From Lepidodermella squamata (lineage: Eukaryota > Animalia > Gastrotricha): a stretch of DNA of 64,000 nucleotides. A program made the position numbers and the translations under genes. Shown here piece after piece: positions 6,885-60,823 of the stretch (position 1 is its first letter; each line of letters opens with the position of its first letter). A model generated the notes under the pieces. That model was not told the origin of the DNA, searched no databases, and saw nothing but the letters and a program-made list of their open reading frames with translations. The stretch is from contig JBLDXI010000025.1 in assembly GCA_047495785.1 (NCBI GenBank), positions 2,108,001 through 2,172,000 on the forward strand, given 5' to 3'.

Positions 6885-8719
6885 ATGGAAAGTACCGAGC
6901 AGAAAGCCAATCAGAAGCAGAGATATACTGTCTTCTGCAACGTAATGACTTCATTCGACTTTTCGAAACCAGGTATAGGCATTTCATTCGTAGGTATGTG
7001 GCAAAGTTGTTCCGCCTAGACCGCTGTACCATCCGAAGCGCTGTAACGCTTGCCAGGTAAACATCTTCTCAACTTTTATATATGATTAACCAGGATTTAT
7101 CCAGAAATTTTTCTCTCGACAAGCCAAACGACGATACGAATTTCAATGTATTACTGGAACATTTGACTGCAAAATACAGTGTGGAGAAACGCGAGGTTGT
7201 TGCAACCGTTGCCGGCTCGAAAGATGCTTTGCATCCCAACGGCAAACTCGTATTACCTACATTTGTATGCATTTCAACCAAAAATTAATTGAGTATAGCT
7301 GCAGGTAAGGCTTCCGAACACAATGATGCGATACTGAACGCTAGCTCTTATGACTCGCGCTTTTATGATAGCAAGGAAGGTCAGGGAAGGTTCAGCGAGA
7401 AAAATGCGAGAAATAACCAGGGCTTGATCATATCCATCCCCACCAATCCTTACGATTATTATCTGACGCTAGTAGAAGACGCCACCAGAAATTCTATTAT
7501 CGGGATCACGTTTCTGCATGACTTGAACTCGGTAATTCTTCATTTAATATTTACGTATATAGTATGCACTTTTCTGTCTCCTGTAGTTACCGCTACGAAG
7601 AAGGAACACTCCCTATGATAACCTCAGCACTTTGGCAACGGAATTTTCCAGGGATCAAATCAGAATGTATAATGATGCAGGCATACGATTCGCGCGTTAC
7701 ATGAAAGGTGCATATTACTTTGACGTTAATAATTAATCAAATTTTCAGATAAAGCGCCGCTTAATGCGCTGAAATTTAGCCATATTCTTTCATCGGTGCT
7801 ACCAGAAGACTACATATCGTTAGGGGCGTTGGATAAATCGAATTTAGGCTTATTTACTTCCATTTCAAGGTAATTAGTGACAAGTCTTTAGTTTTTTTAT
7901 TCTTCATTCACGTGAGAAATTTGCTTTTCACTTGTGAGCCGTCACCTTGAATCAGATGTAAACAAGCCTGAATTCGTCGCTAACAATATCGACGACATTT
8001 ATAATGTAAAAACCGCCATTTTGCAGAAGCCTTCGCCATTTCCGACATCGAGTGGCCTGAAACAGCCACCACCGGATGGTCTGAAACAACAATTGCTTTC
8101 GTGGCTCAACAAGCAGGCGATGAACATCTCATGAGCATAAATAAAGCTATCCTCCCGCAATTTCTGGACGCATTTCCTGAATTTGAGGTACTTTTTCGCC
8201 CAAATGTAGAGAAGTTAAAATTTTTCCAAATGTAATAACTAACGGAAATCCTGTAATTAGGAATTAACACTCATGATCCCCCATAAACTGGAGTTATCAA
8301 TTATAAACTCTTTACTTACCTTAATTTGCTGTCATCTGTATTTCTGCAGCCTCTTATCATGCGAGCGAAGGAGCTATCGCACGTGATGAGCGGCTGGCAA
8401 CCGACAATGCCCGAATTCGCGTTATTCCTTTGCTATCTGTTCTTCAGTGGTATGTGCCGTCGAAATTCTTAGTGATTCTTTGCAGTAATTCTGTATTCCT
8501 CATTCAGGATCTACGTCTCCGGCACTAGTTCAACTATCAATTATCTTACGAAATTCGCTGCTTTTGCAGCACGCTGCTTTGAGAAGAGAATGTCTGGACG
8601 AGAACCACGTCGCAAGGGCTATTGCTGTCATAAAGCAAGCCGTGGCTATTAGGCCGGAATTCGATTTGAAAGCCGGGGTCTGGGCGCGGAATATTAATCC
8701 ATCATTTTTATCTAACTAG
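6885..8719 (+). CDS. Divergent nuclear receptor-like gene G1 (8 exons; class B DBD, CNACQ P-box)
   Basis: Spliced frame MESTEQ...VFCN|VCGKVVPPRPLYHPKRCNACQ|KFFSRQAKRRYEFQCITGTFDCKIQCGETRGCCNRCRLERC. LBD exons include WQPTMPEFALFLCYLFF. GT-AG introns, stop TAG at 8717. Confidence 0.85.
7814..7990. mobile_element. MITE in G1 intron 5, same family as 16300-16482
   Basis: Imperfect TIRs atatcgttag...tttaggctt / aagcctgaatt...ctaacaatat. Confidence 0.55.
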
Positions 8720-9286: not shown

Positions 9287-9632
9287 AAATTCTAGACTCG
9301 GCAAGCTTCACGGCGCTTTGAATTCCAGTGTCTTAGTGGCAGAAATAATTGCGAAATCCTTCCGGGAAAAACTCGCGGTTGGTGCACTCGGTGCCGTCTT
9401 GAAAAGTGCTTCTCTTTGCGCTTAAACGCAGGTACAATATTTGTTGACGATTGAAGCTTGGTAGACTTCACTTTCTACAACAGTACTGAAAAGAAGAATA
9501 TAAGCATCGAATCAAAGGTCGAAACCACCAATAGTTTGTCATCAACAACTATTCCAGACAGCCTAGCTTTTCGAACTCAGAATAGTTGAGGGAGCCACGA
9601 AGGCATCAATTGTTGGAATCACCTTCTAGCAC
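9287..9632 (+). pseudogene. Nuclear receptor-like pseudogene fragment (exons 3-4 only)
   Basis: KF*TRQASRRFEFQCLSGRNNCEILPGKTRGWCTRCRLEKC, with TAG stops at 9293 and 9627 where paralogs have sense codons. Other exons absent. Confidence 0.85.
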
Positions 9633-11029: not shown

Positions 11030-11265
11030 TGCAGAAGGCAGCTTCATTGCGTCATTAGTAATTTAATATGATGCTTGAACGGCTCTGTGAATTTGCCATT
11101 GTGATCAATAATTCCGCGCTCCCTTTATTTACTGCATGCAGTACTTACAGCTAAATCAAATGATCACAGTCTCGAGCAGTCATTCTCCATACTTTTTGTA
11201 ATGTGAGGCGCCCAATGAGTGCCTTCTGAGAACATTTAATGACTTGTTCTCAGTGAACACGAGGA
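11030..11265 (+). promoter_or_regulatory. Conserved upstream module (before G2)
   Basis: gcttcattgcg, agtaatttaata, gaacggctct, gatcaataa, ttctcagtgaacacgag. Confidence 0.55.
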
Positions 11266-11884
11266 CAAATTTAATTTCTTTCGACCAAGTATTTCGACAT
11301 CCAGCAGCTTCATTTACTTCATTCATTTTCATTTTCATTTTTCTGTGAACAGACAATTACGCAATGTTACTTCTAGTCAATTTCTATTTCCGACTAGATT
11401 CAGGAAACCTTTTCCATAAATTTTGAACTATAACTGCAGAAAAACTATTCCTCCAAATTCCTTGCAGGCAATGAGGGTCATTTTCGAAGCTTTTCCGTGC
11501 TCCTTGTTTACCACTTATGCCGAATAAATCTCCCACTGTAACTTTTCTCTAGTTGAGGTTAAGCTCTCCTGGATAGAATCGGTTGCTTCGAAACTTTTAA
11601 CTATGTAGTTTTAATTATCGATCATATTTTTTTTAGTTAAAACAATCGAATCTAGAATGGAAACTAGAAACTATTTTACTGAGGTGACATTTTACGATTG
11701 CTCCGCAGCTATAACATGCGTTTTCAGCTATCAAAGGTGTATAGACTGGGGTACATTTTTATGAAATTCTCATCAGAAAATGTGCAAATGAAAGCGGTAG
11801 AAAAAATGCAATTACCAATTTTTGAAGACATTTTTTTTGCTATTAATTAATTACTCGAAGAATTTTGTGATCTCATTAATCATT

Positions 11885-13923
11885 ATGGAAGTGGACGCGA
11901 GACGTGTGGCATGCAAGGCATTAAACCTTCAAAAAAAGTATAACCTATGTTATCAACCTGTATGTTGTTTCAGATATGCGGGAAATCTGTTGTGAAGCGC
12001 AAAAACTATTATCCAGGGCAATGCTCGGCGTGTCAGGTAACGAGGAAACAAGATGGAGATGGCGCTTTTAACCAATTCATTTCAGAAATTTTTCACACGG
12101 CAGTCTTCGAGGCGCTATGAATTTCAGTGTGTTACTGGCAGCAATAATTGCAAAATCCCTCCAGGAAAAACACGCGGTTGTTGCACTCGCTGCCGTCTTG
12201 AAAAGTGCTTCGCTTTGCGCTTCCGCTCAGGTATACTATCTACTGACTATTGCGTTTGGTACATAATATATCAGTCTGATTAGGATTGAAAAAGACCGAC
12301 GATAACCATTCTGGTTACGAATCAGAGACAAAAGTTGTTGGGATCACTGCGGATAGCTGTACATCAACGATACCAGACAGTCCAGATCTTGTCCATCTCG
12401 GAATAGTTGAGAAAGCAACAAAAAACTCAATTATTGGGCTCACCTTTATGCATGGCTTACATGCAGTAAGCTAAATGAGTATGCTTATATATTACAATTT
12501 ATTCTCTTTTCGTCTCTAATTCAGTTTCCGCTGCGAAGAAGGAATGTTCCTTATGATGATATCACAGCTTTGAAATCGGAATTTTCTAGCGATCAGCTCC
12601 GAGTCTTTAACGATTCAGGCATTATATTTGCACAGTACATGAAAGGTAGTTGCTAAATTTTGTTAGTTTCGCATCAAGAGGGGCAGGGCAGGGGGAGAAT
12701 AAAGGAGCAAACTGCAATACGAATATCAGCTCATCTGGGGTATGTTACTCGCCCGCGATTGCTTGCCAAGAGGCGAGCATCGATTGAAAACTGATGACAT
12801 ACACAACGATACTGCGTCAAATGATCGAGGCGTTTTCGTATTTCGTGGAAAATTATTTCGCCAGCTGATAGTAGCGCCAGCAGATGACAATCGGTGCTTA
12901 TAGTCATTTTCCAAAGTTCAGAATGATGATCCGCTGCGATTGAAGAAAACATTATCTCTTGCAGAAGCCTTTGAAATTTCTGACCGCGAGTGGCCACAAA
13001 ACGCCGCAAATGGTTGGGCTGAAACTTCAATCGCTTTCGAGTCGCAAAAAAGCGATAACAATGCGCTTTCCATCAACAAAGCCATCTATCCCCAATTTCT
13101 AGCTGCTTTCCCTGAGTTAGAGGTAAATCTATTCATCGCCCCTTTCGTTCCGCAGGGAAACATAAAAGAATGCCATTCAAAATAATAAAGATTCGTGACC
13201 AGATTGGAACACCAGAAAAAATATCACCCTAATAACTAATTTATCTGCCGAAAGCATGAAGTCAGTTTCGGTATCTGAATTCACGCTTTCAGTAAATATA
13301 TGTAACTGCATTTTTGTTCATGAATTAGGGTGATTTTGGACATGAATTCAGATAAATGTTGAAAACTCGTGAATTAGGAAGCTCACAGGTCCCTAATTGA
13401 GGGGATTTCACAAGCTTAAAGTCCGATTTTTTCATCACCCAAATTAGGGTAATTTTTCTCTGGTGAAATGATCTATTGACTTCATACGTCCTAAAACAAT
13501 TATTCTGTAAATTCGATAAAACGAGTATTTTTCTGTCTCCTTTGCAGCCTTTGGTTATGTGGTCGCAGGAGCTATCGCACGTGCTAAATGGCTGGCAACC
13601 GACAATGCCCGAATTCGCTCTATTCCTGTGCTACCTGTTTTTTAGGGGTAAGCGCCAAATTAATCATCACTCCTCACTATCCTCACTAATCATCACTATA
13701 CACAGCATCTAAGACTCACGCATTGGTTAGACTATCAAACGTACTGCAGAAATCGCTGTTCATGCATTGCGCTGCCGGCCAGACAGGAAGTCAGTGGCAG
13801 GCCTACGTCGAAAGGGCAATTACTATTATGGACCAAGCCGCAGCGTATAGAAGATTAATTCATAAGAGTGCTGAGGGTCGCTCAAGTTCTTGGTTGCGAA
13901 ACATTAAGCTGCCAATTTACTAA
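11885..13923 (+). CDS. Divergent nuclear receptor-like gene G2 (class A DBD, CSACQ; GC-AG first intron)
   Basis: MEVDARRVACK|ICGKSVVKRKNYYPGQCSACQ|KFFTRQSSRRYEFQCVTGSNNCKIPPGKTRGCCTRCRLEKC. All LBD exons present. AATAAA at 13959. Confidence 0.85.
13210..13465. mobile_element. MITE with CAC termini and 2-bp target duplication (CACTA/EnSpm-like) in G2 intron 6
   Basis: aa|caccagaaaaaatatcaccctaat ... attagggtaatttttctctggtg|aa. The homologous empty site ctggaaatgat is seen in G6. Confidence 0.75.
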
Positions 13924-14778: not shown

Positions 14779-14830
14779 TGCCGTTGGCCTAATCTAATTG
14801 TCATGCTAGAAGCCCACTGGGGTTTTCTAT

Positions 14831-14887: not shown

Positions 14888-14951
14888 ACTCTTTTTTTCT
14901 TGAAAATGTATTGAAAAAGTATCACATGATCTAGGCATTTAATTTTATATC

Positions 14952-18532: not shown

Positions 18533-20260
18533 ATGGAAGCAAACGAGAGGCGCTCTGCTTGTAAGGTATGCTATTTTAAAACATCTGAATCGCCATCTTC
18601 TACGCTCTCCTTCACAGGTATGCGGCAAGTCTGTTCGGAAACGAAGAACCTATTTTCCCGGTCAGTGCTCAGCGTGTCAGGTACAGAAGATGTCAAGTAA
18701 AAATTAATCTTCCAGCTTTTCTTGTCCAGAAATTCTTCGCTCGACAAGCTTCAAGGCGCTATGAATTTCATTGTTTTACTGGCGGGAATAATTGCGAAAT
18801 CCTTCCAGGAAAAACACGCGGTTGCTGCACTCGCTGCCGTCTTGAAAAGTGCTTCGCTTTGCGCAGAAACTCAGGTTAAACATCTATGGGAGATATAAGT
18901 TTGTTAAATTCTATCTATTATTTTAGCACTGAAGAAAAGTAGGAATACGAATGCTCGTAACGAATCAGATACAACAGATATTGAGACCACTGATGATTGG
19001 ACATCGGCGATCCCGAGCAGTCCAGATCTCGTCGAACTCACAATGGTGGAGGAAGCCACAAAAACCTCAATTCTTGGGCTCACGTTTCTGCACAACTTTC
19101 ACGCGGTACGCTATATGCGATTCCTTATACTAACTAAATAGTCCTTTTCCGCCCCAAATTTAGTACCCGCTGGCAATGCGGAACGTTCCGTTTGATGACG
19201 TTGCAAAGTTAGCATTCGAATTTTCTACAGAGCATACTAGAATCTATAACGAAGTGGGCATAATATTTTCGAGGTTCTTGAAAGGTAAACCATTTTTTAT
19301 TTTGTTTTTGGGTTTAATATTCCATTTTACAGAGGCGTTCCACCTATCTGAGCGGGATTTGGCCCAAGCTGGCGCGACAGGGTGGCAATTAACCGCGCTA
19401 GCTTTCTCATCCCAATCCAGCAACGAGAAGCCATTGTCAATCAATGCTGCCCTCCTACCACAATTTCTCGCCATTTTCCCCGAGTTTGAGGTAATGCTCC
19501 AGTAATTTCACATACGTTTGACAGATAACGGAATAATTACGCTTAACAATTATTGCTTGAAAGTATTGCTTTTAGCTTTTTTTTTACTCAGGCATAAATA
19601 ACTGCTTTGAGAATATCACAATTTTGACAGTGTACAGGGTACCGTACCTCGAGAGGTCCAATAAGTCACCTCCCCCTTCCCCACTTCGAATATTTTACTT
19701 TATCCACTGGTGTTGATTTGTCCAAAATTGTTCACATGTTTCACCTCGCATTCCTCTGAAAAACGCGTGTTCTGCTAGCTTTTTCCACTATGTCATTTGG
19801 CGTCTTTAAAAAGTATCGCGAAAATCAGCCATTATTCGAGCCCCGGCGTCCTAGAATGCGTCATTTAAATGTACCTATTTCTGCTTTGTAGCCAGTCGTG
19901 TTGTGGGCACAGGAGCTTTCGCACGTTCTAAGCGGCTGGGAACCGACAATGCCTGAATTCGCTCTATTCCTCTGCTATCTGTTTTTTAGTGGTATGAGTA
20001 TTACTCCTCACACGAAGTTTTACTGATTTTCTTACGCAGCATCTAAAAATCTGTCATTGGTTCGGCTATCGAATGTACTGCAGAAATCGCTGGTCATGCA
20101 GTATGCTGCTTTGAGAAGAGGATGTGAGTCGCGCGACACGGGCTACATCGCAAGGGCCATTGCAATCATGAAGAAGTCTGCAGCTTACAGGCAACGATTC
20201 TATAAGAACGCAGAGGATCGCTCGGATTTCTGGATGCGAACCGCCGAGATATCATTCTAA
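18533..20260 (+). CDS. Divergent nuclear receptor-like gene G3 (class A DBD)
   Basis: MEANERRSACK|VCGKSVRKRRTYFPGQCSACQ|KFFARQASRRYEFHCFTGGNNCEILPGKTRGCCTRCRLEKC. Eight exons in frame with GT-AG introns. Confidence 0.88.
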
Positions 20261-21948: not shown

Positions 21949-23854
21949 ATGATCATAGCGAAAATCGATGGGAAGGGTGTTGCCTGCAAAGTATCTTTAA
22001 AATATGCATAGCCCATTTATGAATTGTTCAATCGTTCCAGATATGCGGCAAGCCTGTTGTGAAACGAAAAAACTACTACCCAGGGCAATGCTCAGCGTGT
22101 CAGGTAAAGGAAGATGAAACTTCAAAATGGAGCTTTTAGCTTGTGAAAATTCATAGAAATTTTTCACTCGACAAGCATCGAGGCGTTTTGAATTCCAGTG
22201 TGTCACTGGCAGGAATCATTGCGAGATCCTCCCTGGAAAAACTCGCGGTTGTTGCACTCGTTGCCGTCTTGAGAAGTGCTTCGCATATCGCGTGAACTCA
22301 GGTAAATATCTCGAGGCGATTAACATTTTTTAAATTCTGTCTGATACATTAGGACCAAAAAAGAGCAGCGATATCAATGATAGCAAAGGATCAGAGACGA
22401 AATTCCTTGAGATCTCTGGGGATAGTTTGACTTCAACGATACCAAGCAGTCCAGATCTAGTTCATCTCGGAATAATGGAGAAAGCAATTAAAAACTCAAT
22501 TATTGGCATCACCTTCATGCATGACTTGAATGCGGTAAGCTAATTGCGTTTCGTTATTTTACAATTTGTTCTAATTTTGTCTCTTATTTAGTTTCCGCTG
22601 CGAAGAAGGAATGTTCCATATGATGACATCTCAATTTTGAAATCGGAATTTTCCACCGATCAGATCAGAATCTTTAACGATTCAGGCATGGAATTTTCGC
22701 AGTACATGAAAGGTACTTACTTAAATTTCTCTAGCGTCGCACTAACGGGAACGGGGACGGAGAGCAAGAAAGTGATTAATTTGAGTCAAGCACCATTGTT
22801 GCGTGTGTGAATTTGATAAGATATTCCCTAACCTTTTCGCTTTGAGTGATTCGCTTATGCCGTGAGGAAAGTTGTTATTAAACAACCGAAACGTCGGCTT
22901 GTTCTTTCTTGTTAACAAGTGTCGCGGTAGTCCGAAAGGTTTAGGGGTTAGGGAATGTCTTAACAAGAGAGTGAGGTGCAAATCGAATATCACTTCATCA
23001 GCACTCGGGAATGTTACACGGTCGATTGAGTGGCAAGAATCGAGCATCGATAGAAAGCTATGAATAAATGTCTAAAGATGGTACTGCGTCGAATTATCGG
23101 GGCACTTTCTCATGGAAAAAATATTGACAAAGAATGCCACCCGAATGACCCCCGATGTAATGAAGTGGTATGACCCCCGGTGTTCGGTGTTTTTCGCAGT
23201 TTAGGATGAGAATTTGCTGATAAACTTTAACTCTTGCAGAAGCCTTCGAAATTTCTGACCGCGAGTGGCCACAAACCGCCGCGAATGGCTGGGCTGAAAC
23301 CACAATCGCGTTTGATGCGCAACAAGGGGACAAGAATCCGATTTCCATCAACAAAGCCATCCTGCCTCAATTTCTGGCCGCTTTGCCCGAGTTTGAGGTA
23401 AATCTCTTAACCTCCTCTTTCTTTGTGCAGGGCTAAAAATTAAAAACTGTGCAATGAATTGGCTTGTCTCGTTTGCAGCCTTTCGTTATGTGGTCGCAGG
23501 AGCTTTCGCACGTTCTGAATGGCTGGCAACCAACACTGCCCGAATTCGCTTTATTCTTGTGTTGCCTGTTTTTCAAAGGTGAGCACCAAATTGATGATTA
23601 TTCCTCACACGTATCGCCTTTTTCTTTTATTCACAGCATCTAAGACTCGGGCATTGGTTCGAATTTCAAATGTCCTGCAGAAATCGCTGTTCACACAGTG
23701 CTCTACTTGCCGAAGAGGAAGTCAGTGGCAGGACTACGTCCAAAGAGCTATTGCTATCATGGAGCAAGTCGCAGCGCATAGGTGTATATTACATAAGAGA
23801 CCACAAGATTGCTCAAGTTCTTGGCTGCAAAACATCAAGCTGCCACTTCACTAA
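21949..23854 (+). CDS. Divergent nuclear receptor-like gene G4 (class A DBD)
   Basis: MIIAKIDGKGVACK|ICGKPVVKRKNYYPGQCSACQ|KFFTRQASRRFEFQC... All exons present. Confidence 0.8.
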
Positions 23855-24840: not shown

Positions 24841-26540
24841 ATGGAGATCAGCTCTAGCCCTTATTTATGCAAGGTATGCTTATTCGAACTCGAAATAATG
24901 TGATTTCATTATTCATATCTTTGAATGAATTTAAGATTTGTGGTAAAGTTGTTACGAGGCGTAAGTACTATTGTCCGAAGCGATGTGCAGCATGCGAGGT
25001 AACAAGATAATATGCGCTGATTGATTAAAAGTCTGAAACCTAGAAATTCTTCACTCGGCAATCTCCGAGACGTTTTGAATTCGAGTGTATCACTGGTAAG
25101 AATGACTGCAAAATTCTGCCGGGAAAAACTAGAACCTCTTGCACCCGCTGCCGTCTCGAAAAGTGTTTCGCTTTTCGCGAAAACCCAGGTAATTTCTTTT
25201 AGCTATGTAAAAAATGTACACATAGTTATAATAACCCTGCTGACTGAGCTTCGATGACCTTGACCGCAAATAATGATGTTTCAGAATCGTTGGGCAAAAG
25301 ATTAAGCAGCGATAATAGCAATGCTAGTGACGAATCCAATAACGAAATCACAGCCGATTCAACGATATCAAGCATTCCTGATCTCAAGTGCTTAGCACTG
25401 ACCGAAATTGTCACAAAAAACTCAATTATTGGACTTACATTTCTGCATGACTTACATTCGGTAATTCAGGAGCATTCGTTTTATATAAATTTACTTTAAA
25501 CACATGGCTAAATTTAGTTACCACTGCGAGAACGGAGTGAACCTTACGAGGACGTCGCCAAGTTGGCATCAGACTTCGCAACCGGTCAGACGTTCATGTT
25601 CATCAGGGCAAGCACAAGATTCGCTCATTACATTAAAGGTAGGTATCTTTAAATTGATCATGCGGATAGCTTTTATATGTATTGCTCATTCATTGCAATC
25701 AATCATTGCAATCATTGAGCAAATGAGCAATGAGCATCGTTTCTCGATAGTTCAAGACATTTAGAAAGAGAGTAATAAAATAGTTGAACCTTGCAGAGGC
25801 TTTTGGTGTTTCTGATCGCGACTTAGTTCAGGCCTTAGCGATTGGGTGGCCTGTAACTGCACTGGCTTTTGCTGCTCAACAGGGCGACGAAAACCCAATA
25901 TCTATCAACAAAGCTATACTGCCACAGTTTTTGACCGTTTTTCCTGAATTCGAGGTAAACCTCTTCATTTCTAAACTTTTATAGATGTGCACGCAAACGT
26001 TAGCACAAGGCTTGTTTGAGCTTGTTTGCACTAGTTGTACCGTTTACAATAGGTCACAAATAGGTCAGTCAATTTCCAGCAAAATATCTAATATTTGATC
26101 AGCACTATAGGACTCGGTATTAGTGCGGTATTAACGATTGTGAATATGTTTTTTCTCAGCCTGTCGCTATGTGGGGGAAAGAACTATCGCACGTGTTTAG
26201 CGGCTGGCAACCGACACTGCCGGAATTCGCCTTATTCCTTTGCTACTTGTTTGCTAGGGGTAAGCGACTTGTTCATGGGCAATCTTTACGTACCACGGTA
26301 TAACTTTGCTGTTGCAAAGGATCTTCGACTCCGGCCATGGTTAGATTATCAGAAATCTTGCAGAAATCACTAATCATGCACCACGCTGTATTACGAAGAG
26401 GATGCAAATCGCAGGACGAGAACCACGTCGAGAGAGCAATAACTATCATGGAGCAAGCAGCGACGTACAGGCCGACATTTTTCAAAAAGGCAGAGGCGCG
26501 CTCAAGCCAGTGGTTGCGCAACATAAGTGCATCATGTTGA
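24841..26540 (+). CDS. Divergent nuclear receptor-like gene G5 (class C DBD, CAACE P-box)
   Basis: MEISSSPYLCK|ICGKVVTRRKYYCPKRCAACE|KFFTRQSPRRFEFECITGKNDCKILPGKTRTSCTRCRLEKC. The exon 4 acceptor tttcag at 25284 keeps the frame. Confidence 0.82.
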
Positions 26541-27903: not shown

Positions 27904-29755
27904 ATGGAAGTCATCGTGAGGCATGTTGCTTGCAAGGTATTATATCACCAGCAGCGTAAATTATGTACCCACCTCCATATCTTATCGCCAGGTATGCGGA
28001 AAGTCTGTCATGAAGCGAAACAACTATTATCCAGGGCAATGCTCGGCTTGTCAGGTAAAGGAAAACGAACTTTTTCAGAATGGAGTTTTTAATCTGCCAT
28101 TTTTACAGAAATTCTTCACTCGACAAGCTTCCAGGCGCTTTGAATTTCAGTGTCTTACTGGTAGGAGTAATTGCGAAATCCTTCCAGGAAAAACCCGCGG
28201 TTGTTGCACTCGCTGTCGTCTTGAAAAGTGCTTCGCTTTGCGCTTAAGCTCATGTAGATTATTCCTAGGCGATTAACATCTCTTAAATTCGGTATTTTCC
28301 CTTAGCACTGAAAAAGAGTAATGCTAGTAACGAATCAGAGACAAAAGGTCTTGAGATCACTGCCGATAGTTTGCCATCAGCGATCCCAGACAGTCCAGAT
28401 CTTGTCCATCTCAGAATAGCGGAGAGAGCCACTAAAACCTCAGTTATTGGGCTCACGTTCCTGCATGGCTTACATGCAGTAAGTTTACTTCGTTTCCTTA
28501 TTTTTAATTCATTCTCATTTCGTCTCTAATTTTAGCTTCCGTTAGGAGGAAGGAATGTTCCTTATGATGACGTCACAATGTTGGCATCGGAATTTTCTAA
28601 CGATCAGATCAGAAGCTTGAACGATATGGGAACAATATTTGCCCAGTACATGAAAGGTAGTTGCTACATCCCGCTAACTTTACATCTAAAGTAGAATTCA
28701 CATACTAACGCGACAAGAATTCGGGGTTCTTGTCTCTTATCTTCGTCTCTTTTCCGATTCAAAAATGAGAGACCAGGAGACATGAGACATGAGCGGAGCC
28801 AAAGAAACGCTAAAGGCAATAGAAAAGTGCAATGTCTCTTCATTTCAATGTCTTTCATGCTCTCGGGTCATACGCATGATTGCTTGGGTAGAGGCGGCCT
28901 CGATTGAACGCATCGAATATAAATGCCGCATCGAATTATGGCGGCCCTTTTGTATCCTTGGAAAAATTATGACGACGCAGCTGAAGTAGTTCCTCATCCT
29001 AAATAACTTTCAGCCTTTTTCCCGAAAATTCAAGATTACAAAACATTTACTCTTGCAGAGGCCTTCGGAATTCCTGACTGCGAGTGGCCACCAAACGCTG
29101 CGACTGGTTGGTCTGAAACCACAATTGCTTTCACAACGCAACAAGGTGACAGCGGTCCGATTCCCGTCAACAAAGCAATTCTTCCTCAATTTCTAGCCGT
29201 TTTCCCCGAGTTTGAGGTAAATCTCTTCATCAACCCTTTCGATACATAATAACTGGTTTAAGAATGCCTTTCAAGATCATAGAAATTGAAATCGGATGAT
29301 ACTGGAAATGATTGCTAGAGTCATATAAATGAACAATTATGCAATGAATTCGACAGCTAAATTATTTATTTGTCTCATTTGCAGCCTATCACTATGTGGG
29401 CGCAAGAGCTATCGCACGTGCTAAATGGCTGGCAACCGACAATGCCCGAATTCGCTCTATTCCTGTGCTACTTGTTTTTTAGTCGTACGCTTCTAATTGA
29501 TGATAACTACTCACATGTGATTGATTTTCTCACACAGGATGTAAGACTAGGGTTTTGGTTCGATTATCAAATGTCTTGCAGAAATCGTTGTTACTGCAGT
29601 GCGCTGCTTTGAGGAGAGGATGTCAGTGGGAGGGACAAGTCGACAGAGCCATTGCTATTATGGAGCAAGTCGCAGCGTACAGGCAATCATTTTTTAAGGA
29701 AGCAGAGGATCGATCAAATTCCTGGGTGAGCAACGTCAAGCCATCACTTAGATAA
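27904..29755 (+). CDS. Divergent nuclear receptor-like gene G6 (class A DBD)
   Basis: MEVIVRHVACK|VCGKSVMKRNNYYPGQCSACQ|KFFTRQASRRFEFQCLTGRSNCEILPGKTRGCCTRCRLEKC. Eight exons in frame. Confidence 0.88.
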
Positions 29756-31658: not shown

Positions 31659-33273
31659 ATGGAAGCCACCGTGAAGGGTGCTGCTTGTAAGGTATTTTAT
31701 CCTCAAAACATGAATAACCCATTCCGTCATTTTTCTCTCCAGATATGCGGAAAGTCTGTTGTAAAACGAAAAAACTACTTTCCAGGGCAATGCTCGGCGT
31801 GTCAGGTAAAAAACTAACTTCGAGATGGTGCTTTTAACTTTTCATGTCTAGAAATTCTTCACACGACAAGCTTCGAGGCGCTTTGAATTTCAGTGTGTTA
31901 CTGGTAAAAATAATTGTGAGATCCTCCCTGGAAAAACTCGCGGTTGTTGCACTCGCTGCCGTCTTGAAAAGTGCTTCATTTTGCGCTCAAGCTCAGGTAG
32001 AATATCCCGAGTTGATTAGCATTTGGTAAATTCTGCTTTTAGCATTTAAAAAGAGCAGCGAAAAGAACCATAGTTACGAATCAGAGAAAACAGGTCTCCA
32101 GACCTCTGCTGATGATTGGTGTTCAACGATACCTAGCAATCTAGATCTATACGACCTCGGAATAGCGGAGACAGCCACGAAAAACTCAATTATTGGGCTA
32201 ACGTTTCTGCATGGCTTACATTCAGCAAGTTATCTGCGTTTTCCTTTTTCTAATTTATTCTTGTGTCATCCCTAATTTAGCTTCCGCTGAGAGGAAGGAA
32301 TGTTCCTTATGATGACGTCACAATTCTGAAATCGGAATTTGCCAACGACCAGATAAGAATCTTTAACGATTCAGGCCTAATATTTGCACAGTATATGAAA
32401 GGTACACAAAAGGGTCAAAGGATATATCAGAGGGGTTTTCCAAAAATCTAGACGATGATCCGCAGCGATTGAAAAATGTTAACTCTTGCAGAAGCCTTCG
32501 GAATTCCTGACCACGAGTGGCCGCAAGCCGCTGCATCTGGTTGGGCAGAAACCACAATCGCCTTCTCAACGCATCAAGCCGATAGCAATCCGCTGGCGGT
32601 CAACCAAGCTATTCTTCCTCAATTATTCGCCGCTTACCCTGAATTAGAGGTAAATATCTTCCCCATCCATTCGGTTATAATTAGGGATTCCCTTCCAAAA
32701 TTATAAAGATTCCAGACGAAATAGGATATGGGTTATCAAATAGGTTGAATAAGTTAGCTCTTTCGACCATTCGCACTCGAGTATGCAGGCGTTTTTTTTT
32801 ATTTCAACCCCCCGGTCTTGATCAGCTGCTTCGTAGATTATGGAACCCCTTCTAAGTACGAATATACCAACCCATTATTTATTTGTCTCATTTGCAGCCT
32901 GTCGCAATGTGGGCGCAGGAGCTATTGCACGTGCTCAATGGCTGGCAACCGACGATGCCCGAATTCGCTCTATTTCTTTGCTACCTTTGCTTTAGCAGTA
33001 CGCAAATTGCTGATCACTACTGACCACTGACGAGTGATTGATTTTTCTTACACAGGATCGAAGACTCGGGTTTTGGTTCGATTATCAAATGTCTTGCAGA
33101 AATCGCTTTTTATGCAGTGCGCTGCCTTGCGGAAAGGAATTCAGTGGCAGGACCACGTCGAGAGAGCCATTGCCATCATGGAGCAAGTCGCAGCGTACAG
33201 GCTGGCATTTTTTCAGCAAGATGAGAATCCACCAAGTTCATGGGTGCGCAATGTCAAGTTATCATTAAGATGA
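31659..33273 (+). CDS. Divergent nuclear receptor-like gene G7 (class A DBD; GC-AG intron 4)
   Basis: MEATVKGAACK|ICGKSVVKRKNYFPGQCSACQ|KFFTRQASRRFEFQC... Donor gcaagt at 32225. Confidence 0.85.
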
Positions 33274-37801: not shown

Positions 37802-39399
37802 ATGGAAACCGACGTGAGACATGTTGCTTGCAAGGTGTTATATCTTCAATGTATGTGTAATCCATATTCTCATATTTGAATTATTCCAGATATGCGGCAA
37901 GTCAGTCGCGAAGCGAAAAAACTACTTTCCAGGGCAATGCTCGGCGTGTCAGGTAAAAATCAAACTTCGAAATGGAGCTTTTAATGTTAAATGTACAGAA
38001 ATTCTTCACTCGGCAAGCTTCAAGGCGATTTGAATTTCAGTGTCTTACTGGTAGCAGTAATTGCGAAATCGTTCCAGGAAAAACTCGTGGTTGTTGCACT
38101 CGCTGCCGTCTTGAAAGGTGCTTCGCTTTACGATTAAGCGCAGGTTGAATACCCACAGACGATTGAAGTTCGGTAAATTCAGTCTTTTACTTCAGCACTG
38201 AAAAAGAGCAGCGATAAGAATGCTAATAACGAATCAGAGGCCAAAGGTCAGGAGAACACTGCCGATAATTGGACCCAGGCAACGATCCCAGGCAGCCCAG
38301 ATCTTCTCCACCTTAGAATTGCAGAGGAAGCCACAAAAAGCTCAATTGTTGGGCTCACCTTTCTGCATGACATGAATTCAGTAAGTTGTGTGAGTTTCCT
38401 CAGTCCACATTGTTTCTATTCGTTTCTAATTCAGTTTCCGCTACGAAGAAGAAATGTTCCTTATCATGATATCTCAATTATGGCATCGGAATTTTCTACC
38501 GATCAAGTGAGAATCTACAACGATGTCGGCATAAGGTTCGCACAGTACATGAAAGGTAATCATTACTTATTCAATCTGATATTCCGATAATCCATTTCAT
38601 CTTACAGAGGCTTTCGCCTTATCTGATCGGGAATCGGCACAGGCCATTGAGACAGGATGGCTTTTAACCGCGCTAGCTTTTCCAGCACAACCTGGCAATG
38701 ACAATCCACTTACAATTAATGACGCGGTTTTACCACAGTTTCTGGCCGTTTTCCCGGAGTTTGAGGTAGTTATTTGGTGGTTGATGTATTTTAATGATTC
38801 GAGATGCGCCTGAGGATATTTAGATGAGAAAGGCAAGTTTCCGACTAGTGCGCGAAAAGTTTTGTCTAATTTGGTGCCGTACATACGAGAGTCGCTACTA
38901 TTGCGATCATCGCGGTCTTGGGGCATGTGGACATCCTAAATGTTCAGTCTGAAAGTTGTTTGGGGCCTGAAGCACAGTACAGTACAGTATATGCAGTACA
39001 TGTATCTAACTTTGTCTATTTTGCAGCCTTTCGCTAAGTGGGGAAAGGAGCTGTCACATGTGCTGAGTTGCTGGGAACCGACAATGCCAGAATTCGCTTT
39101 ATTCCTCTGCTACCTGTATTTTAGTGGTTCGCACAAAATTGATGATCACTCCTCATGCTTAATGCTCTTTATTTCTTTACTCAGCATCCGAGACTCGGGC
39201 ATTGGTTCGATTATCAAATGTACTGCAGAAATCTATGTTCATGCAATGCGCTGCTATGAGGAAAGGAAGCGAGTGGCAAGACCACGTCAAAAGAGCAATT
39301 ACTATTATGGATCAAGCCGCAGCGTACAGGCGAACATTTTATAAGAAAGCAGAGGATCGCTCAAGTTCATGGGTGCGCAACATCAAGCTGCCTTTCTAA
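37802..39399 (+). CDS. Divergent nuclear receptor-like gene G8 (class A DBD)
   Basis: METDVRHVACK|ICGKSVAKRKNYFPGQCSACQ|KFFTRQASRRFEFQCLTGSSNCEIVPGKTRGCCTRCRLERC. Eight exons. Confidence 0.87.
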
Positions 39400-39866: not shown

Positions 39867-40372
39867 ATGGCGATCAGCGGGCGGCTAGCGGGTCAAAAAC
39901 AAAGGGCTACAATATTCTGCAACGTAATACTATCCCCGGATGCTCGAAATCCGGTATAACCATTTCTTCCATAGGTATGCGGCAAAGTTGTTGCGCCTAG
40001 ACTACGATACCAGCCGAGGCGATGTAACGCCTGTCAGGTAAACTCCGCCTCCCGTATCACCTCTAATTTATGATTTTTTGGAATCATTTTGAGAAATTTT
40101 TTGCTCGGCAATCCCAACGACGATACGAATTTCAATGTATTACTGGAAGATTCGACTGCAAGATACAGCATGGAGAAACGCGGGGTTGCTGCACCCGTTG
40201 CCGGCTCGAAACTTGCTTTCTATTAAGAGGAACAAATCGTAAGTTATGTATTTCAACCAGCAAAACATATAATGGCCCAGATCATAGAAAGCAAGCTTCC
40301 GAGCCTTTAAGCACCGATGCTAGGGAACTTAATTACCGGGCTCATTTATCATTTCTCAATGACTTGCATTCA
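39867..40372 (+). CDS. Truncated nuclear receptor-like gene G9: intact DBD and short hinge, no LBD exons (possibly a pseudogene)
   Basis: MAISGR...IFCN|VCGKVVAPRLRYQPRRCNACQ|KFFARQSQRRYEFQCITGRFDCKIQHGETRGCCTRCRLETC...SFLNDLHS. Frame stays open to 40582 if unspliced. Confidence 0.65.
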
Positions 40373-41140: not shown

Positions 41141-42764
41141 ATGGACGAACGCGATGAAGAAGTTGCTCAAGAGCGAGCTACAATCTACTGCAGGGTAAAA
41201 GCTTCGCATGTTTTTTTTGCCTGCTCATAATCCAATCATTTTGCTCACAGGTATGTGGCAAGGTTGTCCCACCGAGAAAGCGATATCATCCTAGGCAATG
41301 TAATGCCTGCCAGGTAGGAACATTCCTTGTCAATTTGGCTCTAAGCAATTGTCTGGTAATTATTTAGAAATTTTTCTCTCGACAAGCCGATCGAAGATAC
41401 GAATTCCAATGTATCGGTGGCAAATTTGACTGCAAGATAAAGCAGGGAAGAACTCGTGGTTGTTGTACCCGATGTCGGCTTGAAAAATGCTTTGAAACAC
41501 GTATCCAAATTCGTTTGTCATCTTATTCGCTGATCTACTTGAGAAAATGACTACAACATTTTGCAGATATGAAGAAGCAAGTTGCCAAAGAAGATCCTGC
41601 AAATTCAAAAATTGAGCCGAGTGGCCCTTTTGGAGTTGACAAGAATAATTTGTCCCAAATCGACCACATTGATGACTCAAGTTTAGTCTTAGTCGAAAAG
41701 GTGACAAAAAAATCAATTTTGGGACTCACGATTCTGCATGATTTATATTCGGTAAGAGAAAGAATTGACTTTGCGATATTTTTCGAAAATTTTCCATTTC
41801 CATAGTTCCCTCTCCGAAAACGCGATAAACCGTATGTCGACATCAATATGTTGGCCGCTGACTTTTGCATTCATCACATCAGCATTTTCTACAATTTGAG
41901 CTTCAAATTCGCGGAGCACATCAGAGGTTGGCTTTTATTATTCATGGATTTTGTTCGTGATTAGTTCATATTCCCTAGATGCATTTTCATTGTCTGACTC
42001 TGATTTCGACGCAACTTTGACTACAGGCTGGGCACCAACAGCTTTCACATTTGCAGCTCTGCCGAGTAACCAATGTGCCATGTCCGTCAACGATGCTATT
42101 CTTCCTCAATTTTTAACCATTTTTCCGGAGTATAAGGTTAGTATCGATAGTAGATATTGAGCAGGCCAAGGCGTAGCGCGGTAGTTTAAGGTCACCTTGA
42201 GCAAATCAAGTATAAGGCGATATGGCGTAATATCCTCCAACGTTAACGTGAATTCGTAGAAAATGACGATAAATCATGCACAGCCATTAGCAATTAGCCA
42301 TGTGAAGAGTTGTTGGTTGTTGTATTCATCTGCTTCTACTAAAATGTTTCCACAGCCAGTGGTCGAGCTATCCAAGGAGCTTTCGCACGTGATAACATGC
42401 TGGAATCCATCGATGCCCGAATTTGCCTTACTACTCATTTTTTTGTTCCTCAGTGGTGAGACTTTTCTTGTTCAGAATGTTCTCGAACTCGTCTCCACTT
42501 TATCCAGGAAAGAGCGTTCGAGCGACAAACCCCCGCCTGACTCAACTTTCAAGACTCGCGAAAAAGTCTCTCGCTGTTTTGAAATCATCAACCTCAAATG
42601 GCGATGAAAGCCATAGTGACAACTATCCCAATCGAATACCAACAATATTGGAAAACCTTGCTGAAATAACACCAGGTATCATTGAAACCACGGCAGCTCG
42701 CCGAGATTTCGCTTTTACAGAGCAGCAATTCAGCATGGCTATGGAGAGGCTTTCAATGTCTTAA
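41141..42764 (+). CDS. Divergent nuclear receptor-like gene G10 (class B DBD; most divergent LBD and last exon)
   Basis: MDERDE...IYCR|VCGKVVPPRKRYHPRQCNACQ|KFFSRQADRRYEFQC...; WNPSMPEFALLLIFLF; last exon ends MERLSMS*. Confidence 0.83.
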
Positions 42765-43768: not shown

Positions 43769-45486
43769 ATGGATACCAACGATGAACAGTGTGTCAAGAA
43801 ACAAAAGTCAGTAGTCTACTGCAACGTAATTATTTTCGTGACTTTTTTGACTCCACAACCTAATTTATTTCATATAGATTTGTGGAAAAGTTGTCCCGCC
43901 GAGAGAGCGTTATCATCCTAGGCAATGTAATGCTTGCCAGGTAATTTTTTATTCTCAACGTTTTCGGTAATAATTTCTAGCATTCATTTAGAAATTTTTC
44001 GCCCGACAACGCGAACGAAGATTTGAATTTCAATGTATCACTGGGAAATTCAACTGTGAGATAAATCCGGGAGAAACTCGTGGTTGCTGTACCCGTTGCC
44101 GGCTTGAAAAATGCTTTGCATTGAGACTCCAAAGATGTATGTCATTTGTTTTCCTATTTTTAGACAGATATATATATAAGTAGAATCCTCTAGATTTAAG
44201 GAAGAAAAGCGATGACTCTCCGGGCGATACTGAAAAGGATCCAAATGAAGATTCTAGGTCGAAAGAAGATAACTCGGCTTCAAATGAAAATTCATGTGGC
44301 ATCTGGCTTAGTGCCATTGGCGAAGAATCAGCCTCCCGCTTTGTAACTGCTAATAGCAGGAATTCAATGATACCAAACAACCCTGTTCTAATCCACTTCA
44401 GACAGGTGGAGGAAGTCACCAAAAGCTGCATTATCGCGCTCACGTTTCTGCATGACTTGCATTCGGTAACTTTATCTAGGTTTTCTCAGTCCAATCACTC
44501 ATTCCATGTCGAATTTAGCTCCCGCTGAGAAGACGGAACGTTCCTTATGATGACATCTCCCAGCTAGCATCAGAATTTTACACCGGTCAGATCAGGATCT
44601 ACAACGAAGCAAGCACCAAATTCGCTAAGTACTTAAAGGGTACACATTTTTTCAATTAATCTGATTTTGCTCATCGATTCATTTCAAGTTTAATGTTACT
44701 CTATTGCAGATGCTTTTGGAGTTTCTAATCACGAATTGACTCAAGCTGTGGCGACCGGGTGGCCCTCAACTGTGTTAGGTTTCACTGCCCAACCTGGCAG
44801 CGATAACCCAACACCAGTCAACGAAGCTCTCTTACCAGCATTTCTGACCGCTTTTCCCGAGTTTGAGGTAAACACTGTTAACCGCTATTTTCAACGGTAC
44901 ATGATACGAAACATACAGTTGAACATGTATGATGCTATGCTATACAGGCGTCTCACCTTCATGTTCAAAATAAGAATCCCAATATTCCATATCTCATGAA
45001 GCAAATGAGTTGAGCCCTAGCCCCTAGCGTGATTAACATTGTTCGGAAGCTTTTCATCGGTCGAAGGCGGAGTCTAACATTGTAAATCTATTTATTATTT
45101 TTACAGCCTGCCGTTATGTCGGCTAGGCAGCTATCCCGCGTGCTGAGTGCCTGGCAACCAACAATGCCGGAATGCGCTTTATTCCTCTGTTACCTATTCT
45201 TCAGCGGTATTTATCAAATCTGTGTTTTCCGTTTTGGGTACATCAAATGATTCTTTGATACGCAGGATCCTCGATTCCGAAATTGGTTCGACTGTCAAAT
45301 TTCTTGTTGAAATCGCTGTTCATGCATTACGTTGCTCTGAGAAGAGGGAATCAGCGGCAGGATGGAATTCACATCGAAAGAGCCATGGCTATCATGCAAC
45401 AAACCACAGCAGATAGACCGACATTTTTGAAAAAAGCGGAGGCTCACTTAACTTCCTGGGTGCGAGAAGTCAAGCCGTCCTTGTAG
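43769..45486 (+). CDS. Divergent nuclear receptor-like gene G11 (class B DBD, long hinge)
   Basis: MDTNDE...VYCN|ICGKVVPPRERYHPRQCNACQ|KFFARQRERRFEFQC... Eight exons in frame. Confidence 0.86.
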
Positions 45487-48488: not shown

Positions 48489-50394
48489 ATGGACTACAAC
48501 AGCAACCGTCTCGTGCAGAAACAGAGAGTCACAGTCTACTGCAATGTTACAACTTTATTTGGCCTTTTGACTTTTTAATCCATTTCTTTCATAGGTCTGC
48601 GGCAAAGTTGTTCCGCCGAGGACGCGATACAACCCGCGGCAGTGTAGCGCTTGCCAGGTTAACTACGTCACAATTCTGTCACACTATTTTCCCCACTATA
48701 AATATTTAGAAATTTTTCACTCGACAATCCGATCGAAGGTACGAATTTCAATGCGTCACTGGGAGATTTGACTGCGAAATTAAACCGGAACAATATCGTA
48801 ACTGTTGCAGTCGTTGCCGGCTGGAAAAATGCTTTGCAGTGCGTGAACGAAGACGTATGAAATATTTTAATTTGATTACTCTATGGAATGAGCAAATTAC
48901 ATTGCCCAGATATTACGAGGCAGCTTGCTGGGCCTTCTACTACTGATACTAGGTTGGATGGTTCGAGCCGCTATAATGCTAGTGAAGAGTCGGCAACTTC
49001 AAGCATTATTCGCGATAGCTGGAATTCAACGATACCAAGCAATCCCGATCTATTTCAATTCAGTGCGGCGGAGAGAGCCACCAAAAGGTCAATTATTGGG
49101 CTCACGGTCCTGCATGACTTCCATTCGGTAATTTATCGCTCAATTCTGGGCTCATATTAGTTTCGTCCAGTCTCCAGGCGACGGTTGCGCAATTGGAGGG
49201 TAAAAGAGGACTTATGCGCGAACCCTAGTCGAAAATTTTATAAATTTCAAGGCCTCGTGCGGTAATGCCAGCTGTCTATTGGTTTTGATTATTTAGATTA
49301 TTTAGGCGGCTTTTATTCCAAAAGTTAATTCAGCGATTCTCTATCGCATCAGAGATCGCATAAATATAGGGTTCTCGCGATAAATATTAATAGGAACATG
49401 TTTTACGCGCATCTTAACTTTCGAGAAGCGATTACGAGCAAAATTTAAGATGCGGGTGAAACTTATTTTGTTCGCGCTCAAAACTAATATGGGCCCGGAA
49501 TTTATCTGTACTTCCCTTGTTCTTGTCTAACCACTCGTCAAAATTGTTACGGACCAAATTCAGTTCCCGCTGCTAAGAAAGAACGTTCCTTACAATGACG
49601 TTACCAAGTTAGCATCAGAATTTTCCAACCTACACGTCGAGATGTTCAACAAAGCAAGCTCAAGATTCGCACAATACATGAAAGGTATATAAGGATAATC
49701 TTTTGAGCTGATCAGGCGAATGCCTACTTTTTTCTTGCAGAAGCTTTCGCCCTTTCTAACAGCGAGTTGGCAGAAATAGCTGCGGTAGGATGGACTTTAG
49801 TCGCACATGCTTTCCCATGTCAACCTGGCGATGAAAATCCAATCTCCATCAGCAAAGCTATCATGCCACAATTTTTGTCTATTTTCCCCGAGTTCGAGGT
49901 AAATCATCTGCTCTTCTTATTTCCATTCTGCCTAGTTTATCATTGCTTATCGGATTTTGAATGTGGCATTTCAGCATGATTTTAACATTTACGGTATCTG
50001 CCCTTTTGCAGCCGCTCATTCTTTGGGCAAAGGAGCTTTCACACGTCTTTAGCGAATGGCAACCAACAATGCCGGAATTTGCTCTATTCATTTGTTTCCT
50101 GTTTTTCAGTGGTAAGTGCTGAGCCGTATTAAAGTAATTTATTGTATATCATCCTGATGTCTTTCCTACTTAGGATCAAAGACTCCAGCAATGCTTCGAC
50201 GAGCGGATGTTTTGCAGAAATCCCTCTTAATGCATTACGTTTCTCTAAGAGGAGGCTGTCAGTGGCAGGACGAGATGAATCACGTCGAAAAGGCAATGAC
50301 TATCATGAAGCGAGTTGCAGCGTATAGGCCGATATTTGTGAAAAAAGCGGAGGATCGCTCGAGGCTCTGGTTGCGCAACATCGATTTCTCATGA
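48489..50394 (+). CDS. Divergent nuclear receptor-like gene G12 (class B-like DBD, CSACQ)
   Basis: MDYNSN...VYCN|VCGKVVPPRTRYNPRQCSACQ|KFFTRQSDRRYEFQCVTGRFDCEIKPEQYRNCCSRCRLEKC. Eight exons. Confidence 0.86.
49144..49500. mobile_element. MITE in G12 intron 4
   Basis: TIRs ttctgggctcatattagttt / aaactaatatgggcccggaa. Confidence 0.65.
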
Positions 50395-53147: not shown

Positions 53148-55038
53148 ATGGAAGCTATCGTGAGGCATGCTGCTTGTAAGGTATGATATCATCAACTACT
53201 TAAAAATCCTTTTCCATATCTTTCTCTCCAGATTTGCGGGAAGCATGTCATGAAGCGAAAAAACTATTATCCAGGACAATGCTCGGCGTGTCAGGTAAAG
53301 GAAGATGACTCTTCAGAATGGAGCTTTCAACATGTAATGTCCAGAAATTCTTCACACGGCAAGCTTCGAGGCGCTATGAATTTCATTGTCTCACTGGCAG
53401 GAATAATTGCGAAATTCTTCCTGGAAAAACTCGTGGTTGTTGTACTCGCTGCCGTCTGGAAAAGTGCTTCACTTTGCGCTCAAGCTCAGGTAGAATAGCC
53501 CCAGGAGATTATCATTAAGCAAATTCTGCTTTTTTCTTCAGCTTTCAAAACGAGGAATGAAAAGATTTTAAGAAATGAATCAGAGACAAAAGATCTTGAG
53601 ACAACTGCCGATGGTTGGTCATCAACGATACCAAGCAATCCAGAAATAATCGACCTCAGAATAGCGGAGAAGGCCACTAAAAACTCAGTTATTGGGCTCA
53701 CGTTCCTCCATGGCTTTTATGCGGTATGTTCGCAGTCTTTTCCTGTTCTATAATTTAATCTTTTATTGTAACTAATATAGCTTCCGCTGCGAAGAAGGAA
53801 TTTTCCTTATGATGACGTCACAATTTTGGCATCGGAATTTTCTAACGATCAGATCAGAATCTGCAATGATTTGGCCACAACATTTGCCCAGTATATGAAA
53901 GGTACTCGCTAAATTTTGCTAGCTTTGCACCAAAGGATAAGGGAAGGAGAAAAACAGACCTAAGCACAATACAAATATGAGCTCTCCTAGATGTTTAATG
54001 CCTGATTGCGTGTTTAACGGCTACAGGCGAGCTTCGAAGCTGAGACAAACTAATTTGCATTTTCTTATCAGATAGATTGGGATGTTCCTGATTTACCAAA
54101 TAATTTCTAAATATTCACCTGGCTGGCTAGGTAGGCAAATCTAAAAAGCCGCCGAATTTTGGGCAATTTGCTAGCAGGGTATCATATACACATGCATGTA
54201 CCTAATATTATTCAGCGATGCTGCGTCAAATTATCGAGGCCAGATTCGGCCATTTTCCGAAAATTCAGTATGATGACCCGCTACGATTGAAAAAAAGTTT
54301 ACTCTTGCAGACGCATTCGGAATTCCTGACCGCGAGTGGCCTCAAAACGCCGCGGCTGGCTTGACTGAAACCGCAATCGCTTTCACGTGCCAACAAGGCG
54401 ATAACAATCTGCTTTCTATAAACAAAGCTGTCTTACCTCAATTTCTAGCTGTTTTCCCCGAGTTTGAGGTAAATCTCTTCACCTCCTGATCATTTCTTTC
54501 GCATCCCTGTCCTTATGTAGTGATACAAATTCCATAATGTCATCAATTAATGCAAGATTTATGAAGAGCCATATATTCAAAAACAATCAACAATATTCAA
54601 AAACTCGTATTTATTGAAGTGGGAATATACCGGCACACTATGTATCTCTTTTGTTTTTTGTTTGCAGCCTGTCGCTATGTGGGCACAGGAGCTGTCGCAT
54701 GTGCTAAATGGCTGGCAACCGACGATGCCCGAATTTGCCCTATTTTTGTGCTACCTTTGTTTTAGTGGTACGTGCCAAATTGCGGATTACTGCTGACAGA
54801 TTATCGATTTTCTCCCACAGGATCGAAGACTCGGATTTCAGTTCGATTGTCAAATGTTTTGCAGAAATCGTTGTTCATTCAATGCGCTGCTTTGCGGAGA
54901 GGAATTGGGTGGAAGGACTACGTCGAAAGGGCCATTGCTATAATGGAGCAAGCTGCAGCGTACAGGCTAACACTTTTTGCGGTAGAAGAGGATCGAGCAA
55001 GTTCCTGGGTACGCAACGCCAAGCTATCATTTGGATAA
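53148..55038 (+). CDS. Divergent nuclear receptor-like gene G13 (class A DBD)
   Basis: MEAIVRHAACK|ICGKHVMKRKNYYPGQCSACQ|KFFTRQASRRYEFHCLTGRNNCEILPGKTRGCCTRCRLEKC. Eight exons. Confidence 0.88.
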
Positions 55039-60315: not shown

Positions 60316-60823
60316 GAATTAACAGTTAGAATGCAGCATTGCATCAAATAAGAGACGGAGTTACCGAGTCATCGTGTAAAAACGACGCGTATCACAGATT
60401 CTGTAATTCTAACATCGGTATTCTGTTTTTAGGTCCTCTGCTATTTATTGAGCCTATTGATAAGTTTAGTGAATGAATTTGAAAATTTATCGTAAATAAC
60501 ACGCTGGCACGTGCGAAAATTTTGACGGGGCGTCCTTCTCTACCCTGAGCCTGAGAACATTTTACAGTGGTGTCGAGTTGATTATTTTCGAGATGATAGT
60601 CGCGCAACAGAGGAAATTACTTGATTGAGTAATTAGAAAGGAAGAGTTTCCTTCAAATCTTTAGCAGCGCCCAATGGCAGGCTTTTTGGAATTCGTCGAA
60701 GTCAGATGTGAACTATTTGCTTCTATATTCTGCCAGCAATTTGCTTCAAAAATCACCCTCAATAATCGCTGATTTTTCATGAATATTATGAATAATTTTA
60801 TAAAAAAGTTGAATCGATCGATT

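Follow-up and report, generated by a model that had tools for sequence, protein, structure and literature searches.

The 64-kb stretch of Lepidodermella squamata contig JBLDXI010000025.1 analysed here, hereafter the window, is eukaryotic-type DNA with a G+C content of about 40% and introns of around 50 nt. It carries a tandem array of genes which, judging from their sequences, are of the nuclear-receptor type, with an extremely divergent DNA-binding domain (DBD) plus a putative ligand-binding domain. A tblastn search of the window with exons 2 and 3 of one of them, the target gene at 11885-13923, identified 15 copies possessing both exons, all on the + strand, and two pseudogene pieces besides (9287-9632 and 46132-46309). 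A gene of the array typically covers about 2 kb in eight exons; its predicted product has a short N-terminus (9 to 24 residues in exon 1 ahead of Cys1, the first zinc-finger cysteine), one single zinc-finger DBD and, C-terminally, some 270 residues forming a conserved domain.

The segment 11885-12230 corresponds to exons 1 to 3 of the target gene, an intact gene of 355 codons and eight exons on the + strand. Exon 1 (11885..11917; MEVDARRVACK) extends from the start codon through Cys1 plus one codon. Exon 2 (11974..12036; ICGKSVVKRKNYYPGQCSACQ) contributes Cys2, the X14 loop and the Cys3-S-A-Cys4-Q stretch, namely the first part of the P-box, while exon 3 (12086..12230; KFFTRQSSRRYEFQCVTGSNNCKIPPGKTRGCCTRCRLEKCFALRFRS; KFFTRQ...CRLEKCFALRFRS) provides the remainder of the recognition helix, KFFTRQ, followed by a second zinc finger featuring a 6-residue D-box, a 10-residue loop, a CC doublet and CRLEKC. 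Exons 4 to 8, likewise on the + strand, were placed via comparison with the paralogs, and their phase and stop codons were checked exon by exon. Exon 4 (12284..12465), which encodes the hinge and is matched exactly by contigs of the sequencing run X2 described below, is followed by exon 5 (12525..12645), exon 6 (12917..13122), exon 7 (13548..13647) and exon 8 with the stop codon (13706..13923). The most conserved of these C-terminal exons is exon 7 (82% mean column identity among the paralogs), which bears the motif PxxMWAxELSHVLxGWQPTMPEFALFLCYLFF and a weak match to the Pfam family Hormone_recep. All introns of the target gene are of the GT..AG type, with the exception of intron 1, which has a GC donor (AAG/gcatta).

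The initial annotation of this locus had proposed a non-canonical cysteine spacing, C-X2-C-X14-C-X2-C-X15-C-X6-C-X10-C-X2-C-X4-C, and this pattern is indeed present in 14 of the 15 copies, the exception being copy 60910, where a one-codon deletion results in X9 instead of X10. The canonical C-X2-C-X13-C-X2-C-X15-C-X5-C-X9-C-X2-C arrangement (values X13, X5 and X9 as given in PMC10497141) is thus departed from at three places in the same 14 copies (X14, X6 and X10), with one residue gained in the loop of finger 1, another in the D-box and a third in the loop between Cys6 and Cys7. HMMER alignments to the solved DBDs of RAR, MR, ER and an ancestral steroid receptor display gaps of a single residue at two places, the D-box and the loop preceding Cys7. 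The eight cysteines at zinc-ligand positions, in the order C-C-C-C / C-C-C-C, as well as a ninth cysteine are invariant in all 15 copies, and the recognition helix comes after Cys3. The FF core of this helix, the aromatic residue before Cys5 and the CRLEKC helix have been kept.

The extra cysteine that had been reported for most copies takes the form of the CC doublet in 13 of the 15, being SC in copy 24936 and AC in copy 60910. Because S or A takes the first position of the doublet in these two copies and the second position never varies, the zinc ligand is taken to be the second Cys, and the extra residue to be the first. The opposite assignment, with the first Cys as ligand (X9 then X3), was ruled out on the same grounds. 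The HYG and GM motifs are missing from the DBDs of the array, in line with the initial annotation, and both are present in the RAR sequence aligned alongside.

The DBD of nuclear receptors is among the most conserved DNA-binding modules of animals. In the array, the recognition helix C[S/N/A]AC[Q/E]KFF[T/A/S]RQ was found in 15/15 copies. With respect to CEGCKGFFRR, this amounts to the replacement of E by S, N or A, of the first G by A, of K by Q or E, of the following G by K and of R/K by T, A or S, with FF and the second Arg being kept. In the structure of the estrogen receptor bound to its response element (PDB 1HCQ), base contacts are made by the Glu, by the Lys after Cys4, and by the Lys and the Arg after FF. 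Three of these four positions are changed in the array and the second Arg is retained, which agrees with the earlier proposal that most of the residues reading AGGTCA have been replaced.

The same proposal held that the new helix residues are conserved across the array, and this was evaluated by pairwise Nei-Gojobori estimates of nonsynonymous (dN) and synonymous (dS) divergence over 64 DBD codons, summed per exon. The medians are 0.11 for dN, 0.75 for dS and 0.14 for dN/dS, with half of the pairs being synonymously saturated, and the closest pairs have dS values of 0.29-0.5 and dN/dS ratios of 0.08-0.34. A dN/dS of about 0.14 at a dS of at least 0.29 indicates that the pattern is not due to chance, that the copies are old and that the DBD is under purifying selection, the new helix residues included. 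The invariant positions comprise K-F-F, R-Q, R-R, E-F, T-R and RCRLE-C-F, and most of the variation falls in the loop of finger 1, at the first residue of the P-box, at D-box positions 4 to 6 and in the loop after Cys6.

The exon layout is identical in 15/15 copies: one codon follows the Cys at the end of exon 1, exon 2 opens with [I/V]-C, and both DBD introns, of 45-56 nt, are in phase 0 and occupy the same positions. The X14 loop lies wholly within exon 2, and X6 and X10 lie wholly within exon 3. Other splice points therefore cannot restore the canonical spacing, since all three deviant spacings are intra-exonic, and a splicing artefact was ruled out as the cause of the spacing for this same reason. 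The transcript evidence, which is thin, comes from the contigs of X2, a run guessed to be RNA (a second run, X1, is DNA-like); the X2 contigs were placed on 6800-12799. In a neighbouring gene these contigs display GT..AG joints (7530>7586 and 8185>8348), and in the target gene they are identical to exon 4. One X2 contig stops matching the window at 12036 and then reads AAATTCTT, which is the exon 3 start of the close paralogs 27992, 31743, 37890 and 53232, whose exon 2 ends are 94-97% identical to that of the target gene. The CQ/KFF junction between exons 2 and 3 of a close paralog is thus seen in an RNA-like contig.

The 15 copies are split by finger 1 into three groups: copies with CSACQ and ...YYPGQ, copies with mostly CNACQ and VVPPRxxYHPRQ, and two outliers with YYCPK and either CAACE or CSACQ. 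Besides the target gene, DBD exons 1 to 3 of class S (CSACQ) were located on the + strand at 18533..18864, 21949..22291, 27904..28243, 31659..31986, 37802..38133 and 53148..53479. Intron 2 of the copy at 27904..28243 is open and in frame, so that the entire DBD could be queried with this copy. In the copy at 21949..22291 (copy 22041), the start of exon 1 (21949-21990) has moved upstream: a one-base insertion at the usual start codon (ATGGGAAG versus ATGGAAG in the neighbours) puts that codon out of frame, and exon 1 is kept open by an upstream ATG.

Class N (CNACQ) is represented on the same strand by DBD exons 1 to 3 at 6885..7239, 41141..41502, 43769..44126 and 57113..57469, and by a copy at 39867..40228, a remnant reduced to the DBD, for which tblastn found neither hinge nor C-terminal exons up to the start of the following gene (41141). 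That following copy may itself be decaying, given that its C-terminal exons are weak or missing. The other + strand paralogs are a class A copy (CAACE; 24841..25178) with an additional Cys in the finger-1 loop and without the CC doublet, a copy combining a class-N-like finger 1 with CSACQ (48489..48844), and the copy at 60779..61159, which lacks the CC doublet and in which the one-codon deletion restores X9. In the copies other than those at 39867 and 41141 all exons are present, with no in-exon stops in the tblastn alignments. As for the pseudogene pieces, the one at 9287..9632 (+ strand) consists of exon-3-like and exon-4-like parts with in-frame stops and no exon 2, and the one at 46132-46309 is a stray exon-8-like piece detected by tblastn.

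Family assignment relied on searches of Pfam and the PDB with single exons and with the naturally open, unspliced open reading frame (ORF) at 27992-28252. In the exon-level queries, the Pfam family zf-C4 (PF00105) scored 14.1-23.5 bits on exon 3 for a cut-off of 21.1, one of five exon-3 pieces being above it, and the unspliced ORF scored 18 bits. The PDB matches were exclusively receptor DBDs (E 1e-3 to 0.2), no receptor subfamily standing out in the PDB profile search, and the look-alikes of exon 3 in the ESM Atlas were generic zf-C4 clusters only. Hormone_recep (PF00104) matched exon 7 in 7/11 copies over profile positions of about 110-147, with E-values of 0.04-0.13, all of these matches falling short of the cut-off.

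To place the array among known proteins, an exhaustive profile search was conducted with the 15-sequence exon-3 alignment against 1.84 billion representative proteins. It returned 23 proteins at E <=1e-3, of which the highest scorers are Cys-rich repeat proteins, and the best true receptor matches reached 35-41 bits. The best true single-domain match, at 41 bits, is P0009 of the bdelloid rotifer Didymodactylos carnosus; P0012, a receptor encoded without introns on metagenome contigs, scored 38 bits, and a few others 35-38 bits. None of the true receptor matches of this search has the xAC[QE]K P-box, and none of the matched proteins has any similarity to the C-terminal exons. A scan of metagenome contigs with the back-translated pattern retrieved only the P0012 locus, on two contigs, and the P-box strings of the array were not found in a receptor context in the searchable literature. 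Neither the representative proteins nor the metagenome contigs yielded a close relative.

The novelty that had been ascribed to the P-box requires nuance: no identical P-box was found in the databases or searchable papers, but the nearest published one, CEACKK, shares the xACxK-FF form. As to the spacing, a survey of the profile matches found X14, a 6-residue D-box and X10 each singly in other receptors and never all together. The array is best explained as a clade of nuclear-receptor-type transcription factors that would be restricted to its lineage and have expanded in tandem.

Several of the proteins encountered in these searches deserve mention on their own. P0012 (373 aa) is encoded without introns on metagenome contigs of up to 60 kb (L001-L004, at 8001-9122 and ~11820-12924), adjoins a second zf-C4 gene, and belongs to a locus that is nearly identical in several samples. 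P0011/P0029 (875 aa), P0016 (500 aa) and P0010 (868 aa) carry three to six receptor-type zinc-finger modules per chain, with highly unusual P-boxes; they represent either gene calls fused across tandem arrays or genuine receptors with multiple DBDs.

We favor, with moderate confidence, the reading that the array encodes zinc-bound DBDs with a new half-site preference, tuned by the S/N/A residue, in which the long and variable D-box may change the dimer geometry. According to this scheme, the proteins would still bind DNA through a DBD folded on two zinc ions, but the half-site that they read would differ from AGGTCA; S, N or A at the first P-box position may tune the site between sub-classes, and the variable residues of the longer D-box could alter the dimer partner or the half-site spacing. 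Changed DNA specificity of the array receptors is likely, and the earlier inference of a different target element or a non-DNA role is plausible in view of the precedent of Caenorhabditis elegans, where it is already established that a lineage-specific expansion rewriting the helix led to new DNA motifs (PMC4434323), such motifs having been shown experimentally for nuclear hormone receptors (NHRs) with divergent recognition helices (PMC4434323, PMC12856210).

Alternatively, sequence-specific DNA binding may have been lost, the zinc fold being selected as a protein-contact surface (in a dimer partner or a dominant-negative regulator of other receptors) or as an RNA-binding surface. The replacement of three of the four base-contact residues could be understood in this way, as could the Q or E found in 15/15 copies in place of the conserved Lys after Cys4, the very weak zf-C4 fit, and the precedent of C. 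elegans, where most NHRs gave no motif in binding arrays (PMC4434323). We nevertheless deem such a loss unlikely: the DBD has kept a strongly basic character (K/R clusters in the loop of finger 1; RQ, RR, TR and CRLEK all invariant), the Arg and the helix core are retained, and a role confined to protein contacts offers no obvious reason why the helix should be conserved above the loops. It is also conceivable that AGGTCA-like or other known half-sites are still recognized, with specificity arising from residues outside the P-box. In C. elegans, receptors that differ in their helices are able to bind 8-mers that closely resemble each other (PMC4434323), and NHR-49 binds the same repeat as NHR-79 despite a conserved P-box in the former and a divergent one in the latter (PMC12856210). 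However, E, K and K/R have all been replaced together in the array, the sole GGTCA motif obtained in C. elegans came from an NHR with a near-canonical helix (PMC4434323), and the CEACKK domain that heads the two-DBD receptors gave no shift on AGGTCA repeats in electrophoretic mobility shift assays (PMC1810520), which makes this explanation quite improbable in our opinion.

A further explanation, that the pattern stems from wrong exon joins or from a decaying pseudogene array and that the spacing is functionally meaningless, is hardly credible and already largely refuted. It would account for the GC donor of the target copy, for the fragments at 9287-9632 and 46132-46309, for the DBD-only copy at 39867-40228 and for the possibly degenerate copy at 41141, but it conflicts with the intra-exonic location of X14, X6 and X10, with the conservation of intron place and phase in 15 copies, with a dN/dS of about 0.14 at high dS, with the intact 355-codon ORF of the target gene and with the spliced RNA-like contigs. 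The reading of a new half-site preference itself has to face several difficulties. The intron-1 donor is GC in the target copy as opposed to GT in 14/14 paralogs, the exon 1/exon 2 junction and the use of this GC donor were not seen in the X2 contigs, and X2 is only guessed to be RNA. The zf-C4 scores around the cut-off point to an extremely divergent DBD, the E-values of 0.04-0.13 make the assignment of the ligand-binding domain a weak one, and the exon 7 profile found no match in the PDB. Lastly, in C. elegans the helix alone predicts the motif poorly, and most NHRs failed in the binding arrays (PMC4434323).

Other features of the window lie between or alongside the genes of the array. Three tRNA genes, on which ARAGORN and Rfam agree, occupy the spacer after the target gene (14706-15587): Phe-GAA (+), Glu-CTC (+) and Lys-CTT (-). 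At ~33400-35900, the array is interrupted by a G+C-rich insert (53% versus 40%) whose - strand holds an ORF of 308 aa that falls in no clear Pfam family, and whose + strand holds an ORF weakly matching a CCHC zinc knuckle; this insert may be a retroelement remnant. The intergenic segments 9700-10200, 15774-16319, 26960-27097 and 30015-30134 are alike at the translated level (tblastn), and no 8-mer is common to all copies in the 500 nt upstream of the start codons. Ahead of gene 18533, reverse-strand tblastn self-matches revealed inverted-repeat pairs (17147-17326 versus 17370-17495; 16255-16410 versus 16435-16494; 18126-18261), which may be small hairpin elements.

A close parallel to this array is offered by the HNF4-derived supplementary NHRs of Caenorhabditis, which share with it a big lineage-specific tandem expansion, many non-canonical helices and very divergent ligand-binding domains (putative ones in the array). 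To our knowledge, the wholesale rewriting of recognition helices has so far been studied almost only in Caenorhabditis. C. elegans displays 95 distinct recognition helices, for which protein-binding microarrays yielded 13 motif groups (PMC4434323), and NHR-79, with its divergent P-box, binds GACTAC inverted repeats (PMC12856210). The helices listed for these receptors (RA-AA, NG-KT and similar) are nonetheless unlike the xAC[QE]K of the array, whose triple +1 spacing has not been described there and whose splice acceptors are not uniformly nematode-like. No nematode protein was present among the significant matches of the exon-3 profile, and no sequence link to the nematode NHRs was found. Atypical P-boxes are also known from flatworms, together with a CHC2 second finger (PMC8363021).

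When compared with the solved DBDs of RAR, ER, MR, VDR and COUP-TF, the array shares the eight-Cys order, the FF in the helix and the CRLxKC in helix 3, and differs by the +1 in three loops, the lack of HYG and GM, and the replaced P-box. P0009 and P0012 are about 45-48% identical to the exon-3 profile and share with the array a D-box of six residues, which in both reads [IL]TGxxx; in addition, P0009 has the X10 loop and P0012 an identical CTRCRLEKC. In contrast to the array, they feature X13 in finger 1, P-boxes with the canonical Lys (ESCKS and APCKI, respectively) and strong zf-C4 scores (52 and 71 bits, respectively).

With regard to the P-box, the nearest resemblance is found in the two-DBD receptors (2DBD-NR / NR7), whose first DBD bears a CEACKK described as unique to them (PMC1810520, PMC10497141). 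The array shares the xAC-x-K shape followed by FF, and the first DBD of P0006, a rotifer-type two-DBD fragment, shows X14 and a 6-residue D-box. Conversely, these receptors have tandem DBDs whereas each array gene encodes a single one, and the E and first K of CEACKK are S/N/A and Q/E in the array, so that only A, C and the second K are in common. The exon-3 profile scored about equally on the two DBDs of P0006 (23.6 and 26.4 bits), so that a two-DBD ancestry is no more than a lead. We tentatively propose, as a scenario of rather low probability, that the array might be a single-DBD offshoot of a CEACKK-type first DBD that acquired a code of its own, with a shared new half-site read via the invariant ACQKFFxRQ, tuned by S/N/A, and a private dimer code set by the longer, variable D-box. 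Were this so, the DNA specificities of receptors would have exploded in nematode fashion a second time, independently, in a different lineage of animals.

The array thus adds to Caenorhabditis a second lineage with many paralogs, one in which three loop insertions are joined to a helix that is rewritten yet conserved. Its copies, which fall into the S, N and A classes and either possess or lack the CC doublet and X10, would constitute a natural series in which the way the P-box, the D-box and the loop length set half-site and dimer geometry could be followed, and the array also bears on the evolutionary place of the CEACKK domain of the two-DBD receptors.

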